Assembly: GCA_964247055.1 (NCBI GenBank)
Contig: OZ176052.1
Span: forward strand, 124,001 to 188,000
Source: Paragordius varius
Lineage: Eukaryota; Animalia; Nematomorpha
Length of the DNA stretch: 64,000 nt
Direction: 5' to 3'
Shown here: positions 5,432 to 57,900 of the stretch, piece after piece
Layout of the letters: every line of letters begins with the position of its first letter
Position numbering within the stretch: the first letter of the stretch is position 1
The notes under the pieces: model-generated
Told to the model about the DNA's origin: nothing
The model's database searches: none
The model's input: the letters and a program-made list of their open reading frames with translations, nothing else
Position numbers and translations under genes: made by a program

Positions 5432-8284
5432 TGTTTTGCCTTTATTTTTATTTTAATCATAAGATGTACGGTTTTTCAATTGACTAAGAAATCGATTTTG
5501 TTGTTATTAACTCAGAGCACTAAAAACTGAAAAAAATTCTAACGGCAAAATACAAATAAAAGATGGCAAATATTAAGCCGAATTCTCAAAATAAATGGCA
5601 TTTTTAAACAAAATGACATTGATTTTGGATTTAGGCTTAATATTTTTGTTTGGTTGTATCAGTTAGAAATATTTAAAAAAGGGTGTATTTAAGGAATCGT
5701 CTGATTGTTTTTTAACATCAACGATATTTTAAAAACATAAAAATAAATGGATACCTATCACAGAATTTATCTTTTCCGGAATAAACTTTAAACTTTAGGT
5801 GATAATGGGATACGTGATTGCATATAACGGTGAAATTAATTAAATTATAGAAAAGGTTAATCATATCGGAAAACTAAAAGATAAAAATACAAATATTAAC
5901 TATAAATACGATATATGCTTCCTTTCCATTTAGCGTTAATTTTAAGGAGATTTTAGCTGAAATTATTATGAATCAAAATCTCAAAAATAAACCAGTTAAG
6001 AATGTTTAACAGACTTTGCATCTCATACGGTTATATATAGGCATCGACTGCACGCGAAAATAAAGGGAAACATAAAAAATGCACACATAAATTTTTAACT
6101 AAAAAAAGATGGTATATGTAAAATAATTTTAGAACAAAATAATTTATCTCTCCTTCGTGTTGTTATTTTTATTATCTGTAAATTATCATCATTAGAAGCG
6201 CAAATTATTCAGTTGCTTATTTTTTCCCAGTAAAATGTATGAAATATTTTTGTATTTCGATTGATTAAATATCAATACCCTAATAACAAAAAAATTATTT
6301 TAAAATCATCCCTCCGATATATATATATTTCAATTTGTTTCTATTATAAGTGTAAAGGTGTAAACTCATTGATAAAAAAAGTGGACATGTCACTGTTATA
6401 TAAATATATATAATTAGTACTTATATAGGAGGGTAGCTAGTATGTTTTTAAGATTATTTTTAAGACACACTCAGAAAAACAAATATCCTGAATGTTAAAA
6501 AAACAACGAACTTAACAGATAATATTTTATATTAAAAGATGAGTGCAAAAATATTTTTTTGAAAAAAAATGACCTAGGGCTAATTTTTTCATTAATAAAT
6601 AATTATATAAAATATATTTTACACAGTATAAAAAATTAATTAGCATAGAAATAGGGGATTTAACTTGGAATCTGATGCCTTGTTGATAAATATATGACTC
6701 AAAAATGAATACGTAAAAGTCTACCCAAACTAAAATTGACGTAGAAAACCAAAATTTTTTTTACATTGAATAATATTTAGTTTGCGTTTATGGCATATGT
6801 TGAATTCTTATTTTCAAAGGGTCCAGTTGTGCTTATTATATTTTTTCTTAACTATAGAAAATTTATAGCATTGGTATGATAGTGCTGAAATATATTATAG
6901 TTGATTCTCATTGAAATCCGATCAAAACAATATTTAATCTCCGATATTGTTTACTCTCCCAATGATAAATGGAAGATACGTAATATACTAGAATATCAAA
7001 AATATCGTACATATGTATGCCAATAATAAAGTTTTGGAAATTTAGATCCTAAAGGCCTAACTTTAATTAATATTTATCACATCATCATTGGACTTAATTA
7101 TGGAAAGGCATAATATAAGTCTATTTTTAATTTTTTAACAAGTAAATACAATAATTTGTATTTTGTTACGTTTAAACGATGATGTCCATATTCATTTAAG
7201 CGTTGAGAGTACCCGCCTTCGAAAAGTCAAAAATTTAAATAAATTAATATATGTTAACGTTGAAAAATGTAAACGAATGGTGAAATTATTTATTTTATTA
7301 ACTTTTTTTGAATATTTATAATGAAACGTTATCGACCAGTTTGATAGATTTATTTCAATATTTAATTATGATATAACACAAATTTGCATATGTTGTATGA
7401 CTGTTTGTTGCATTACGTTAAATGATTCTCTCATAAGTGGTTAACTGTTTAATTTTCTGACGGTTTAATACCCAATCCAACTATGTTAATGTTTGAAAAC
7501 TATTGAAGCTTCAGTTTTCTCATGTCTAATATTTTATCAAATTTTAAAATTTTTGAGACAACCGAGGTTCCATTCAAATTCAATGTCTATTTATTTTTTA
7601 ATTGGGTAATCAAGCAATTGTGTGGTTATCTGGGTTTATCTCCACTCAGAAATGGAACAAAAGAGATATAAATCTGGGATAATAGACTTATTCAATTCAG
7701 TAATGCATATTAAATCAAAAGAACTTAGCAATAACCCTTTGTGATGAGATCTAATCTGTGAAAATAGCAATACTAAAATACAATTGTTTAGTGGTCATAG
7801 GTCATAAAAAATACCAGTTTCACAATTTTTAGTCATGTTTCCATGTTGAAGCTACATTAATTGGCATAGTGTGTACCTCATTTTCTTGCGAAGTTTAAAT
7901 TACAGAGTTATATAGTGTTATTTAAATCACAGTGCACATAAAAAATATTTTAATTTAATATATATTCACTGATAGAAAATGCAGGATTTAATAGTGCTCT
8001 TAATGAGCCTTACGACTCATTTAAGATTTCTCTATCAAAAATGGCAAAATTTGCCCACCTTATGATAAAAATATTTTTTTGATAAAAGATAAATTCTATC
8101 CTTTCCTTTAATAAAAATGCTAAGTTCATTAAAATATTAAAAAGCATAACTTTTAAAAATATCTAACTTTTAGATGCGGGTTCTCAAAGTCTCAAAATTT
8201 TGTCACTGTTTAAAAGGGCTAGTTTTTAAAAATAAACTGTAAAAAGCCGAAAATACGGATAATCACTATATATTATGGTATCAA

Positions 8285-35997: not shown

Positions 35998-37352
35998 TTA
36001 ATTCAGAATAGTGTGCTTATCAAAAACATTCTTTCTCTGTTCTTGGACTTGACCTTTCCACTTTTCGCTCTGTTTTCCAAAAGGCGCCAAAAATCTCTCC
36101 AGGAAGCGATGATTAGATATTCCACCAGAATTATCAGATGTCCACACTGGAATCGGACTTTCATCCTATAGAAAACACCAAATTTTTGACTTTAAAAATC
36201 AGTATATATCTTTAAAACTTATTTTTCATAAAAAAACTATAATGTGTTTTTAACCAGTTTATGTACCACAAAATTAAAATATATAACCTCAATTCTTTTA
36301 AAATAAGACACGTTAATCAAATTAAAATGATTATTATTGTTTTGGTTTTTAACTTGATTAAAACAAACAGTAAAAGTATTCTATATTAAAATCATTAATA
36401 AAAGTATATGTAACCGTAATTTTTATAGGTAACATAAGAATAATTGAAAAATCCCTATTTCAAATATTTTCATCGAAAATTATTTAGGGACAAAAATTTT
36501 GCAAAATCCTAATATAATATATTTAAAACGGTTATTTCACACAATATTTCAATTGTTTAACCCAATTTAAAGTATATTAAACTTGATTTTGATATGACAT
36601 ATACGGTTGTTCTCCAGATTTCTTGGGATCTAAGCAAGCCAGGAATAGCATGTACAGAAAGAGAGCGGATAAAAGCGATATAATAAATATAACTACAACC
36701 TAGAATAAAGTTAAATCAACTAACTTTAATGGTGAATGTGTTGCGATATTGATATTTGCATTTACATACTGAACAATGTTCGATTTCTTTGAGAAATGAA
36801 ACCAGAGGTCTGACATATTGGCAATTACTAGAAATAAAATAAAAATTATAGATTATAAAGGCAACAAAAATGGTTAATTTTTTTTTTAAATGTGACCTAA
36901 CTTCTTAGTTAAAAAATAAGGTGTTTAAAACAAACTTAATTTTATTGTTAAACTAATTATAGTTACGTATAATGTAAATAGTAAATTTATAAAGACAAAA
37001 TTTATCAGATTCTAGATATAAACTATCCGTTTGAGTTATAAAATAAGGATTATTTAAAGAGTAATCAAATAAATTTAAAATAATTAAGAATCAAAATATG
37101 GTTTTATTTATATGATTTGATATTTTGTTAAGATATAATATACCAGTTTACGGCAGAAACTTTCCCAATATAAATGTGTCGAATAGGTTTTGTATTAACA
37201 GTTGAATTAACGCTCGGTGGGCAGGGAAACTCACATTTACAGCGTTCATCATCGTTTTGACCCTAAAATTTATTGTTAAAAAACAATTAAACCTTTATAG
37301 GATGAACGAAAATTCCAAATCCAATCAGTAAAATAATAATCAACCAATTCAT
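35998..37352 (-). CDS. TMEM9: Transmembrane protein 9 family member
   Basis: Exons 37293-37352, 37144-37262, 36725-36827, 36583-36699, 35998-36165. Signal peptide MNWLIIILLIGFGIF, RCKC, CKCKYQYRNTFTIKVVVIF, YMLFLACLDP and C-terminal KWKGQVQEQRKNVFDKHTILN match TMEM9 family motifs. Confidence 0.93.
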
Positions 37353-37422
37353 AACTCATATGTGGCAAATATTCATGCACAAAAATGCATGGTTGAAAAA
37401 AAAAATTGAAAAGTAAAAAATA

Positions 37423-40400
37423 ATGCATCTAAAATCTATTACAAGTTTAATGGTCCCTAAGGAATTACAAGTTATCTTTTTTCTAAATATTTAGGAATGC
37501 CTTAAATCTCAAAAAGCTCCATCTTGGGAAATATTTGATTCTTATATTGGAGTTTGTTTGGAACAATATAATTTTTCAACCGCAGAAACCTTATACCGTT
37601 TGTTAGATTTATTAATTTCGTCTCAATTGTCAAACTTATCAAATTCTACACAATCAATACCGAAATCAATATTACAATACATTAAACTTTTCAATTATTA
37701 CAATACAAAAGATGCCACAAAAATATTCGTAAATTTCGATCTTTTTTATAAAATAATCCTCCTAAGCTCACAATATGAATCCAAAAATAGTTTTGAAGCC
37801 TTAAGCAACATACTTTTGTATGAAATTTTGTTTTCAGATGAAAATTGGACACATTTAAAGACTTATTTTCTGAGCATAAATAATTCTATCAAAGATGAAT
37901 CCAAAAATAAAAATCATGCCCTAACTATTCACAAATTCCTGGATGAACACAAAAATTTATCCACTTCAAAGCGTAATTTTCTTATATCACTTTTAAATAT
38001 TTTTAATTTAGTCTGATAGTAAAATTCGAAACGATAAGTAATTAATGAAATAAAATTTAAAATCTTTTTAATAATATGGTTTCAATTTTTTTAAAAAAAA
38101 GAGTATATTGGATTTTCCTTCTATTCCAACAAAGTTTAAGCATATTTTTTGTCTTTTATTTAATACTATAAAATATTTTTAACATGTCATAGAGTACAAC
38201 CGTAATATAAATGGCATATGCAAAAATTGATATTTTCTTACTATAAAATATAATTTTACGTAATTAAAAACTCAAACTTTTAATAATTCTTTATTTGACT
38301 AGTATTTTCGGCTTATCCTGAATTACGATCGCTGATAAGCACAAAATTAGTGGAACCAATTTTTCACAAAATTCTCGATGGAAAAAGCTTGAATGATAAA
38401 AGCATTCAATTGATTTTTCCAATCTTAGAAGACTTTGTTTTACAACTTTTTTGTCCTGGGAACTCTGAAGAACAATCCAATTCTACCCATATAAAGGCTC
38501 TTTCAGCCCTTTATAAAATGTTAAATAACCTAAATTTGGAAAATGAGCTATGTGATTATGGTAATATAATTTAAGATTTTTATGATTTTACAGTAATTGA
38601 TTGATATTATACGAACAAAAGTTTAATCTTGATTTATCCTATAAAAAACATTTAATTACAATCGTAAAACATATAATTGATTGTGTTACCAATTTACATT
38701 TCTATCTTATACTTTGTAGTTTAAAACAAGTTATAATGTGATAAATTTTTTGAAAAAAAATATTTGTCTATATTTTCGTGTTTTGTCTGTATAATTTTAA
38801 TTTTTACTGTAAATTCATTGAAACTTAAAAACTTAAGCCTTTATATTTTTGAATGATAGAACCCCTATTTTTTGATAGATTTATTCCCATATAACTTTAA
38901 TAATTACAAATCTAAACTGTCTAATTGCATATGTTTCCAATTTAAAGTTAACAAAAAGGAAAATTTTAAAATCTATATATTTATTAGGATTTAATTTTTA
39001 TCTCTTTCTTTTATAATTCACATTAATATATATATATATATATATCAGAACGTCGCAAGAAACATTTGAATCACACAACAGCCAAAAAACTTAAAAGTTC
39101 TAATGAACAAAAGATCCCTGGAAACATTACAGAATCAAAATCTGAAATCAATTATGTCCAAAAATATCACGTGCTTGTTGAAACTCAAATATCATCAGCC
39201 ATTACAAGGGCTACCTTTAAACAATCCCTCTTGAAAAATCACAATTCCGTCGTTTTAAAAGTGCAACTTGAATTGATTTTTAACGCTCTAACCTTATCAA
39301 ATGCACATTTTACCCAAAATTTTTGTAATACCCTACTTAGTCTTTATAAAACGCAATCCATGGATTTTTCCATTCCTCATAATAACGATTATTCTTTGGA
39401 TTCAGAATACATCTTTCCAGCTTTGGTTTATGTTCACAGCAAACTTTCATGCTTTAATCAACAATTTTTTGATCAAATGTTAAATTGTTTAACAACAGCC
39501 ATGAATAATGCGACAATCAAGGACAAGGAATATCCTCCATTGATTTTGGGACCTAAAACTTTGAATTAGTAAGCCCCCATTTTAATTATACCACCCTTGA
39601 ACAATTCAAATTTACCCTTGAACATTTCAAATTCACCCTTGAACATTTCAAATTCACCCTTTAACAATTCAAATTCACTCTCTAACATTTCAAATTCACC
39701 CCCTTGAACATTTTAAATTCACTCTTAAACAATTTAAATTCACCCCCTTGAACAATTTAAATTCACCCTTGAACAATTTAAATTTACCCTTGAACAATTC
39801 AAATTCACCCTTGAACAATTCAAATTTAATCTTGAATAATTCAAATTTACCTTAAAAATAATTTATCTGTTTTCGGGCGATTAATTAACTCATCATTTAA
39901 AATGAAATATATCTTTATGGCATAGCCTAATGTTTTTCAGTATATATTCATTTTAAACAAAATTTCATTTTTTAAAAATATAATAGGTAATTTAGGATGA
40001 ATTTGAACTGTAAATGGTATATAATTTGGGTTTTACTAAAACGTATTTTTTTTGAAAATTTGATGTTATAAATTATAAATTTCTTGATATTATCAACGAG
40101 AATTAATATTTTCTGTATTAAATATTGAATTCTTGATTTAATATTTATTTAGTATCTGCAAAATTTTATAAATGACACTTTATTTATCAATGTAGGCATA
40201 TTAGTTAAAATTTGATTTTGACTTTACATTTATTAATTTTTTAATATGTTTTAGCTTGAAATATGAAGTGTTTTCTAAAATGCGAATTCCAATTTTACTC
40301 ACCTTCTGTCAGAGCTGTATTCAACTATGGAATGAAAAAAGTTTTTATTTTTATTACTTACATTAAAAACTGAAATTATACGGACAAAATGTAAAAATAT

Positions 40401-53100: not shown

Positions 53101-53514
53101 ACAAAATGGGTGTTATTAAGCTTCATTGAATGGAATAGATTTTCAAACTTTGCCGATACATCTGAGCAGAATTTATGCAATGATTTGTGATTTGCAGAAC
53201 CTTATGTAATGTAATATAAAACCTAATTTTTGAGCAGTTTTATGAATTTTAGTTCCGTGTTCATCTGTTCCTGTCGAAAAAATTATACCGTTTTTATTTT
53301 TTTCATGGCACAAATTTATCCAATTATTTCGCAAAAGCTCATATCTGAAAATTGTGTTGGCTATCGTTGCCGAATAGTAGTGACCAAGGTGAGGAGGGGC
53401 ATTTGTATAAAATATTGGAGTCGTAACAAACAACTTTGGTTCTTTGCATTGGATTATTTGAGTTGAAAATCTTTTTAAAAAATTTGTTGGTTGAAAACAA
53501 GCATGCAGTTTCAT
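47186..53514 (-). CDS. MARS2: Methionyl-tRNA synthetase, mitochondrial/bacterial type
   Basis: Exons 53223-53514, 53083-53200, 52577-52709, 52149-52287, 50932-51116, 50623-50704, 50057-50253, 49436-49578, 49123-49238, 48377-48611, 47186-47696 (2151 nt, phase-consistent). Motifs TTPIFYTNAPPHLGH, TGTDEHG, FVRTTD, IYVWFDAL, IGKDILKFHAILWP, KMSKS; N-terminus resembles a presequence. Confidence 0.95.
48051..48336. mobile_element. MITE family A copy in MARS2 intron 10
   Basis: Same inverted arms. Confidence 0.87.
49602..49827. mobile_element. MITE family A copy in MARS2 intron 7
   Basis: TA-CAGTAAAAAC terminus; decayed right arm. Confidence 0.8.
51319..52043. mobile_element. Two MITE family A copies (51319-51620 and about 51811-52043) in MARS2 intron 4
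   Basis: First copy complete with TA flanks; second decayed. Confidence 0.8.
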
Positions 53515-54938: not shown

Positions 54939-57900
54939 TTAAGGATTACTAAGCGATTGATTTGAATGGACGGAATGTTGTGGTGGGGTGATACTATACG
55001 AATGCGTTGTTGAGTATATATTCTGATCAAAAAAAGCCATGTTTTCTCTTTTTCCTGAATTTTTCTCAGTGAAATTGCCAGTATTTTCCGTATTAATACC
55101 AATTTCCTCACCATCATGGTGACTGTCATAATATTCATAATATTCAGCAGGACAGTCGTCTTGCTGGCTATAAAAATTATTATTTTCCGTGTCCAGTTGA
55201 TCAATTTCTTCGTCTTCTGTTTCGTCGTCAACATAATCGTCCATATAAAAGGAATTTGAAGTGGAACAACCGCCCCCTACTTCACCACTCCCCAGCTGCT
55301 GTTGTTGTTGCTTTGAGGATAGACTCCTACGAAATTTGGCGCGCGCGTTTTGAAACCAAACCTTAGAATCACATATATATATATATATATGGTATATAGT
55401 CAGAGCAAATTTATTTGAAAAATTATTGGAATAAAGATAAAAAACGACCAGTTTAACAACTGAAACATTTGTACTTGCTGTTTTAGTTTATAAATTATGT
55501 GCGTTTAATAAATTCTAGTCAGGTCAAGATATAATAAAATTTGCAAAAGTCATAATCCTCAATCCTTATGCGCATATATCACTATTAGTTTTATAAAGAA
55601 AGCCTAAAGATTCATTAAAAAAAGGGAAAAATTAGCGTAAACCCCATTGAGGAATTTAGTAGGTGACTATTAAAAATACATATATATTAGATACTTGGAG
55701 AACTCGTTTAGACAGACCCGTTTTTTGTGACAATTGTTTCAAGTCCTTGGCGTCTGGATTGTGATTTGCGGCAAAGTAAGTTTTCATCGTTTTTAGTTGG
55801 TGATGTTTGAAAGATGTCCTAAGTCGCTTATTTCTTAAATGATGCATTGGATGGTGATGATGAAAATGGAATGGTAAAATATGATGTGCTCCTCCAGGAT
55901 TATGAGAAATCGAAGTCGTAGAAGAATGGAAATGGGGTGGTATAAAGGGGTAGGGTTGTACCCCAAATACTCCTGGGGTTTGATCGCTTCCTAGAGCTGG
56001 AAAAAAGGGCGGTTTTATAGCCCCTGAAGTACTAGTAGTAAATGGATTGACAAAATCTAAGGCGGTTTTATGTTCATCAATTGTCTTTACAATGGTCAAT
56101 TTTGGAAAGTTTGATGTTTCCTTTTCTAGGGCATAAGGTAGTTGGGTTGGTAAGAGATCATTTGAAGGATTATTTGGAAAAAATGTGTGAAAGCTTTTTC
56201 TTTGAGGATAACACATGTCAGTTCCTTCACCAAGGGTGGGATCCATCCCTTGATTCAATGACCTTAATGGGTCAGTTTCAGCGATCGTTGGAGTAAAGTT
56301 TTGTTCAGGATCTTGAACAGAAGTCGTCTCTAATTTTTTGATAGTTTCCAAATTTTGTGCTATTTGACAAACGGTTGGACCATTTACAGCATCATTTTTA
56401 GTGTTAGGCTCGGTGACTTTTTTCGTTTCATCCGCATTTTCTATCGCTGTTTTACGTTTTTTCTTTTTGACGGTTGAAGTCGCTTTTTTAGTAGACGCTT
56501 GTTTAGCGGGGGCTGAAATTTGAGAGGACGGATCTGTATTCAATTTTGGAAGCGGTGAAGTATCGCTACCAATTCCCTTGTCTTTAACAAATTTCTCTTC
56601 AGAAAAACAACTTTTTAAATCGTTGCGGTTATCTGGTGTATTTGTCACATAACTTGACATGCTAAGATTTTCACCATGTCCGCCATATATCAAAGGAGGA
56701 TGGTTTGAATAAAATATGTCATTATAATAAAACATTGAAGAGTTATTTTGGCCAAAGGGAGTTAAATATAGATTTTCCATATCACTATTCATAAACGCAT
56801 CATATGGATTTGAGTTACCACCATAACTTTCATTATTATAGTTGAGAAAATTATGGTAAGAATTATAAAAAGAGGGATGGTAAAACATGGGTTGATTTGA
56901 TAAAAAATTATCATGAGAATGAAAAGATTGCAAATGTCGAAAACAAATCAGCTGAGTTTCTCCCTCGTGTGCAATTCCTCCAAACTGTTTAACTCGAAAG
57001 GATTCACCTGTCCTTAGCACGTTGGAACAAATATGGCATTTGAAACATTCAACGTGAAAATATGCGATAGTGTTGTTAATAAAATTGGTATTCTCAATAG
57101 AATTTTCATTTTTCTTTGGGGACATTGTTTTAAGTTTCATGACTAAATCTGTCGGTTCAAGGCTTTGGTGACAAGTTTGACAATCAATTTTCGGATTCGA
57201 AGTTTTAGAATAAATTTCTTCGGAAACATTGTCAAGATCGGATGATTTTAAAGAGCCATCTTCCTTTTTAAACAACCTATTATAATGTATTGTAAATAAT
57301 AAAGTATCTCAATAAAATATTTAGATTTTTTCAGTTATATTCCGTTAATAGGTAATTCTTCGCATAATTTAACTCTTATGCAGGGATTGGTTTATTAAAA
57401 ATGATTTTTGCATCCTTATTACGACATACAATAGTTTTGATATGTTAACCTTATTTATTTTTCATTTTTTAATTTAGATACATTATAAAAGTTTTACCAT
57501 GGCCATCTGTATAAAGTCCCTAAGAAACAAATAGCTTAAAGTCAATCCGGAACTACGAACGGTTTGATTTCCATTTCCCGATTGATATCGCACAATCGAT
57601 TATATTAATATTGTCTGCCTACTACTTGTTAATTTCATATTATAATTCAAATAATAACCAATAAATTTTATTACAAAAAGGGCACAATCTAATAAGATAG
57701 CATACTGTTTATATTTTATGTCATTTTTTTCTGTGAACAATATGCTTTTTAACTTGTTTCTTTGTCACTTTATTTAATAATCCTCTTTTGTTCCAACAAT
57801 ATTTTTATGACTCTCATTGTTAGGAAAAAGCAAAAACTATAAAATATATTCCACAATTTATGAATAGACACGCGTCTGTCTTAATAAACTAAATAAACTA

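Follow-up and report, generated by a model that had tools for sequence, protein, structure and literature searches.

Ultra-short candidate spliceosomal introns in a TMEM9-like gene and its divergent neighbour in the hairworm Paragordius varius

Three segments of 24, 25 and 30 nt interrupt two neighbouring genes of the hairworm Paragordius varius and are most likely U2-type GT-AG spliceosomal introns of a discrete class of approximately 21–31 nt in the nuclear genome of this nematomorph. They are located in a 64,000-nt stretch of DNA (assembly GCA_964247055.1, contig OZ176052.1, positions 124,001 to 188,000 of the forward strand), here called the window, the numbering of which is used below unless another contig is named. 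Two of the segments lie in a TMEM9-like gene on the minus strand and the third in a plus-strand gene arranged head-to-head with it. The anatomy of the segments, the restoration of reading frame and conserved protein upon their removal, the preference for GT-AG boundaries, their distinct length class and the canonical splicing machinery were observed directly.

Results

A frame-consistent model with five exons, summing to 564 nt (188 codons), was obtained for the TMEM9-like gene on the minus strand. Its introns measure, in order, 30, 316, 25 and 417 nt and have GT and AG termini throughout. Upon translation, exon 1 (37293–37352) yields the initiator methionine and a hydrophobic signal peptide in 20 codons (MNWLIIILLIGFGIFVHPIK). 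Exon 2 (37144–37262), recognized as an open frame, encodes GQNDDERCKC...AVN and two bases of a cysteine codon; intron 2 (36828–37143, 316 nt) falls within this codon, which specifies the first cysteine of a CNC motif. Residues 13–34 of exon 3 (36725–36827; NCQY...CSVCKCKYQYRNTFTIK) matched positions 30–51 of the Pfam profile Tmemb_9 (22.2 bits). Exon 4 (36583–36699), containing the transmembrane segment VVVIFIISLL..., matched positions 52–76 from its first residue (28.8 bits), and exon 5 (35998–36165) matched positions 114–145 at 36004–36099 (33.5 bits in the genome profile search). The latter exon comprises 55 codons (DESPIP...HTILN; coding at 36001–36165) and a TAA stop codon, and is separated from exon 4 by intron 4 (36166–36582, 417 nt). 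The matches were collinear over exons 3, 4 and 5, while exon 2 alone had no Pfam match. With exons 4 and 5 both above the curated cut-off of 28.6 bits, the predicted protein is a member of the TMEM9 family (PF05434). TMEM9 belongs to the type I membrane proteins and carries a signal peptide. A stop-free frame of 54 codons in another phase overlapped the last exon (36006–36167, minus strand), which is unusual at 27% G+C.

The three segments were found with the positions, sequences and GT and AG termini given in an earlier sequence-only reading of the window, and its statement that read-through is blocked in all three was confirmed as well. The 25-nt segment (intron 3, 36700–36724, phase 0) displaces the frame by a single base, so that read-through meets a stop codon after two codons. 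Position 51 of the Tmemb_9 profile is the last residue of the upstream exon and position 52 the first residue of the downstream exon, and the conserved TMEM9 junction is thus restored by removal of the segment, as had been proposed. In a junction test in which the boundary was defined by the profile (see below), the GT-AG solution at this intron was exactly 25 nt. The same reading had offered a GTATGT donor as an alternative. This donor is located inside the conserved CSVCKCKY...TIK block covered by the Pfam match; its use would therefore delete conserved residues. By profile and frame, the 25-nt segment is almost certainly a real intron and is the best supported of the three.

The 30-nt segment (intron 1, 37263–37292, phase 0) is in frame and was recognized by its context. 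Reading through it from the signal-peptide exon meets a stop codon, TAA, as codon 2 of the segment. The open frame of exon 2 begins right at the acceptor TAG and contains no ATG, and an upstream exon must therefore provide the start codon. The proposal that removal of the segment links the signal-peptide exon to the RCKC exon fits these features. Given this context of signal peptide and ATG-less second exon, we regard the 30-nt segment as very probably a real intron. A second ATG was observed 8 nt upstream of the TMEM9 start; it opens an overlapping frame, MSYELVDYYF... (37263–37360, minus strand), which could represent either an upstream open frame or a minor isoform lacking the signal peptide.

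The 24-nt segment (37471–37494, plus strand, phase 0) begins with GT, ends with AG and is in frame, its terminal TAG being a stop codon; it too was recognized by context. It separates a putative first exon, consisting of an ATG and 15 further codons (MHLKSITSLMVPKELQ; 37423–37470), from a second exon of 171 open codons without ATG (37495 to approximately 38007). The probability of an open frame of 171 codons at the base composition of the window was 2.5e-7, and since this frame contains no ATG, exon 2 is taken to be coding and to require an upstream exon. The ATG at 37423 is the only one between the two genes with a frame that can be joined to the next exon. A 16-codon exon 1 spliced through the 24-nt intron is the simplest solution for the start of this gene. 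On these grounds the 24-nt segment is probably a real intron, context-supported and the weakest of the three.

The plus-strand gene had been labelled URB2, a label that could not be verified. No relatives of its large exons were found with Pfam (six exons), the protein atlas or the PDB sequences, nor did a word search find relatives of the 470-aa exon. The C-terminal domain of the URB2/Npa2 family (Urb2, PF10441) gave no match genome-wide at E <= 10, in a search in which the control genomes gave no match either. The start codons of the two genes (37352 and 37423) are just 70 nt apart, so their 5' untranslated regions must be very short or overlap. This head-to-head arrangement points to a bidirectional promoter serving both genes.

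Chance alone yields many GT..AG segments of such lengths. The window contains 2,340 such segments of 21–31 nt, approximately 18 per kb per strand, and 38 of them fall within 36600–37600. The case for the three introns consequently rests on coding context, and equivalent interruptions were recovered in conserved genes elsewhere. The first three introns of BiP are 23, 28 and 69 nt long, the 23-nt one interrupting GIDLGTTYS|CVGV, and the exons tile the orthologues without gap or overlap across the 23- and 28-nt segments. RhoA (contig 5, 8097300–8098500, minus strand) carries GT..AG segments of 23 and 24 nt. Compared with four Rho1 orthologues of 192 aa, its exons cover residues 1–51 (an exon of 52 residues), 53–102 and 103–192, with 49–50 of the 50 residues of the middle exon identical to the orthologues. 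The 24-nt segment is in frame and contains no stop codon; its retention would add eight residues (VFLHIMMK) that are absent from the aligned orthologues, and it interrupts the universally conserved stretch EKWTPE|VKHFCP. Among 34 adjacent exon pairs of small GTPases of the Ras family, the gap was 22–31 nt in 12, 53–86 nt in seven and 251–3,214 nt in 15, and the tiny gaps ran from GT to AG and fell at conserved motifs, LQIW|DTAG among them. Within the window, a 22-nt GT..AG intron (53201–53222, minus strand) falls in a glycine codon of the methionyl-tRNA synthetase (MetRS) gene between ...TKIHKTAQKL and SANHKSLHKF...; it is flanked by collinear matches to positions 2–58 and 61–95 of the Pfam profile tRNA-synt_1g, the second of which is weak (E = 0.039).

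The specificity for GT-AG was assessed at 14 junctions set by profile coordinates alone, by counting the dinucleotide pairs that allowed a frame-preserving excision. GT-AG fitted 12 of the 14 junctions exactly and all 14 within one residue. For 63 composition-matched dinucleotide pairs, the mean was 1.1 exact fits and 3.3 fits within one residue, with maxima of 4 and 6, respectively. In total, 19 tiny introns of 22–31 nt were curated, in addition to the 24-nt intron of RhoA. The length was not divisible by three in 15 of these 19, so neither stop-codon read-through nor an altered genetic code explains them. A blind scan for mergers of open frames was also tried and discarded, with 60 events for GT-AG and 55.7 ± 9.2 for other pairs; the scan was powerless because overlapping open frames and chance GT and AG dinucleotides are frequent in A+T-rich DNA.

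The lengths of 103 introns were compiled from 13 chaperone genes, the Ras family and 24 kinase junctions, all conserved families; most lengths were estimated from profile coordinates and are accurate to a few bases. Seventeen introns were shorter than 33 nt, one was 33–50 nt, 14 were 50–90 nt, one was 90–130 nt and 70 were 130 nt or longer. The tiny class of approximately 21–31 nt is therefore discrete, sharply set apart and a minority, and the lengths of the three introns at the locus (24, 25 and 30 nt) lie within the observed range of 22–31 nt. In this small sample of conserved families, the genome has two short modes and a long tail. The sequence-only reading had also stated that the same genome carries many long introns, and this was borne out: the other introns in the samples ranged from 43 to approximately 3,200 nt, most of them at least 130 nt. 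No intron shorter than 43 nt was found among the 24 adjacent exon pairs of kinases; kinase matches with internal stop codons may hide in-frame tiny introns there.

The position of the tiny introns within genes was suggestive, not conclusive, of a concentration near the gene start. In the 13 chaperone genes, introns of at most 36 nt accounted for 5 of 19 within the first ~133 profile positions and for 0 of 33 downstream (Fisher p about 0.004), three of the five early cases having been found by inspection. No tiny intron in the sample lay further than about 450 nt from the start codon. Small GTPase genes showed no ordinal bias of tiny introns, and the tiny introns of the TMEM9-like gene are numbers 1 and 3.

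Genes for both small nuclear RNAs (snRNAs) that recognize U2-type introns were present (U1, 124 bits; U2, 178 bits). The canonical 5' end ACTTACCTG is intact in the U1 copies with the best scores, as is the branch-site recognition sequence GTAGTA in U2. A helix-hairpin domain of SF1 was detected (74.9 bits), as were exons of the large U2AF subunit (U2AF65) on contig 8 with 82, 58, 41 and 39 bits; since the gene is divided among several exons, none of them reached the cut-off for the whole protein. More than 30 full or partial U2 copies were clustered on contig 3 (257000–527000), beginning ~70 kb past the end of the window, and a dense cluster of U1 copies was observed on contig 6 (565000–633000). 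One full-length U1 copy has the 5' end ACTTACTTG in place of ACTTACCTG.

In 66 cases, tiny, medium and long introns had the same weak signals, with GT(A/T) as the donor and, in most cases, TAG or CAG as the acceptor, and G at position +5 was in the minority in all three groups. T occupied position −3 in 17 of the 19 tiny introns. Motifs resembling TTAAC or CTAAA were present 7–13 nt before the AG in all three introns at the locus. As a conserved branch motif, TAA(T/C), which occurred in nine of the 19 tiny introns, and TAA were rejected, as they were not above chance. Signals of the minor (U12-type) spliceosome, (A/G)TATCCTT at the 5' splice site and the branch site TCCTTAAC, were found in 0 of the 19. 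The tests done do not indicate an altered spliceosome; subtler changes in its proteins may be present.

The DNA has the character of A+T-rich animal DNA. The G+C content of the window was 26.7%, compared with 26.93% for Gordionus montsenyensis, and its genes include a LIM-homeobox gene, methionyl-tRNA synthetase and a ZP-N gene. The LIM domain and homeodomain were encoded in a single open frame of 538 codons (55656–57272, minus strand), an unusually long exon for this genome. The assembly measures 110.6 Mb; sequenced hairworms have been reported at 200–300 Mb. The mitochondrial contig (contig 44; 15,693 bp) holds COX1 and contains hairpins with arms of 208, 139, 138, 136 and 131 nt that are 95–100% complementary. 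Under the invertebrate mitochondrial code, 10 of the 11 longest hairpins were inside long open frames. Long perfect inverted repeats in mitochondrial protein-coding genes have been described as exclusive to Nematomorpha (PMC6649704, PMC10380579), and the coding palindromes observed here fit this phylum. A tandem array of palindromic units of 49–52 nt was observed just upstream of COX1 (about 6749–7451), and ARAGORN at default settings reported no tRNA genes in the mitochondrial contig. A COX1-like fragment with six stop codons on nuclear contig 1 (10612280–10612597) probably stems from mitochondrial DNA inserted into the nuclear genome.

Discussion

The same weak signals in all length classes, together with canonical U1 and U2, SF1 and U2AF, make ordinary splicing the most economical reading of the three segments. 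We infer that the segments are excised from RNA, and likewise where the branch point lies and how the introns are recognized. The ordinary major spliceosome would recognize both splice sites across the intron (intron definition), relying on GT(A/T) to mark the start of the intron and TAG or AAG to mark its end, both of them very weak signals. An A-rich stretch approximately 7–14 nt before the AG would most likely contain the branch adenosine, so that only ~10–17 nt would separate it from the 5' splice site, near the physical lower limit. In the same genome, this tiny class coexists with a mode of ~50–90 nt and with a majority class that extends from 130 nt to several kilobases.

Several observations weigh against this reading. 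TAA was present in 16 of the 19 tiny introns, about the level expected by chance at 82% A+T. Pfam searches with the exons gave no homology or profile match spanning the 30-nt junction. There was likewise no homology across the 24-nt junction and no Pfam family assignment for exon 2 of the plus-strand gene, which might have another first exon further upstream. At the 30-nt intron, a nested GT..AG segment of 22 nt (37263–37284) could link the MSYELVD... frame to exon 2; its product would lack the signal peptide, and the intron would still be tiny. Finally, within the length ranges searched, a collection of 5.8 billion proteins contained no RhoA or BiP protein from the same species; the best identities were at most 84% for a BiP exon and at most 88% for a RhoA exon.

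The missing homology across the 30- and 24-nt junctions, the absence of detectable relatives of the plus-strand gene and the frequency of chance GT..AG segments around the locus would also be expected if one or more of the segments were not an intron of the main transcript, owing to another upstream exon, acceptor or start, a pseudogene lesion or an assembly error. We consider this improbable. The profile positions abut exactly at the 25-nt segment, both exons downstream of the other two segments open exactly at their acceptors without an ATG, and all three lengths fall inside the 22–31 nt class. Moreover, BiP, RhoA and MetRS, which are essential single-copy genes, carry the same interruptions with orthologue tiling, so that neither lesions nor assembly errors offer a credible account of the class as a whole. 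Removal at the DNA level, as with the internal eliminated sequences of ciliates, or translational bypass is scarcely conceivable. Small eliminated sequences of ciliates are similar in size, and there the resemblance ends: the boundaries here were GT..AG in 14 of 14 junctions, as against ~3 for matched controls, and not TA..TA, and ordinary GT..AG introns occur in the same genes.

The sequence-only reading had gone further and proposed a modified spliceosome or a dual mode of recognition. In such a scenario the tiny introns would be real and removed by a specialized route other than that taken by long introns, either because the early spliceosome is altered or because introns near the 5' end of the transcript are recognized in a second mode (for example cap- or promoter-proximal). 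Some 10–17 nt from the 5' splice site to the branch would not accommodate U1 and U2 particles next to each other in the manner of known complexes, and the sharply separated length classes, the early bias of short introns in chaperones, the location of all tiny introns near the start codon and the variant U1 copy could be taken in the same sense. However, the best-scoring U1 and U2 copies have canonical recognition sequences, both SF1 and U2AF65 are there, and the three length groups do not differ in their splice-site profiles. The positional bias was not found as an ordinal bias in small GTPases and may reflect distance from the start codon or expression level. In addition, ciliates, Dicyema and myxozoans manage with an apparently conventional spliceosome (PMC13644364). 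A specialized route is thus not indicated and appears unlikely, and ordinary U2-type splicing remains the preferred reading.

Introns this short have been described in few lineages. As of September 2026, animal introns <30 bp were stated only for myxobolid Myxozoa and Dicyema, which have compact genomes (PMC13644364). The ciliates, nucleomorphs and dicyemids named by the sequence-only reading for introns in the low 20s thus stood as a list that was incomplete, the myxobolids having been added in 2026. In the myxobolids Henneguya, Thelohanellus and Myxobolus and in Dicyema japonicum, tiny introns are the genome-wide norm with medians of 22–27 bp, and U2 snRNA and U2AF are conventional (PMC13644364). 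The hairworm resembles these parasitic animals in being a parasitic lineage itself, in its GT-AG introns of <30 nt with a 5' signal close to GTa and a weakly conserved A before the AG, in its conventional U2 snRNA and in the presence of U2AF. Unlike in those genomes, tiny introns are a minority here (17 of 103), and most introns range from 130 nt up to more than 3 kb; a median of ~22–27 nt was not found, as 70 of the 103 sampled introns were at least 130 nt long. T at position −3 is also kept here, unlike in myxobolids and Dicyema. The hairworm further belongs to an ecdysozoan phylum, which is not named in the main text of that study (PMC13644364), and the published hairworm genome papers, as far as they could be searched, did not mention introns.

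An architectural parallel is found in parasitic flatworms. Gyrodactylus salaris has short modes at ~32 and ~58 bp with 69% of introns >100 bp, and tapeworms are also bimodal; short-mode introns were concentrated at first positions, and the authors speculated about modified splicing or export (PMC4040987). The hairworm shares the two short modes with a long tail, the parasitic way of life and the non-compact genome. Its short mode, in contrast, is at ~22–26 nt, roughly 8–10 nt shorter and under the supposed floor of 30 nt, and it belongs to the Ecdysozoa, which are unrelated to the lophotrochozoan flatworms. The hairworm pattern is the flatworm architecture with the short mode at myxozoan and dicyemid size. 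Among unicellular eukaryotes, introns of 15–16 nt are known from the ciliate Stentor (cited in PMC13644364). The hairworm shares GT-AG introns in the range of 15–30 nt and an apparently conventional spliceosome with ciliates and nucleomorphs, but those are unicellular with uniformly tiny introns, whereas here the tiny introns are one of three classes in an animal. Tiny spliceosomal introns are also known from chlorarachniophyte nucleomorphs.

Judged by sequence, Nematomorpha very probably add a further lineage to those already known for introns of this kind. Under a stronger interpretation, introns <30 nt would have arisen independently in a third animal lineage, and for the first time as a separate class within a large, long-intron genome, restricted to the initial few hundred bases of transcripts. 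This would point to a distinct form of spliceosome assembly, coupled to the 5' end, on introns with no room for U1 and U2 next to each other; we consider this combination unlikely. If splicing of the segments holds true in RNA, Nematomorpha would be the third animal lineage with introns <30 bp. Tiny introns would then need no genome compaction, as kilobase introns are present in the same genes. Gene finders and aligners with a minimum intron size of 20–40 nt or more would produce broken or mistranslated genes for a sizeable share of the hairworm gene set; in our sample, such minimum sizes affected approximately one in three small-GTPase introns. This mis-annotation could inflate the gene loss reported for Nematomorpha. 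Genes that combine tiny introns with long ones would offer a direct test of the minimum intron size that the animal spliceosome can handle, and of the effect of position in the transcript.

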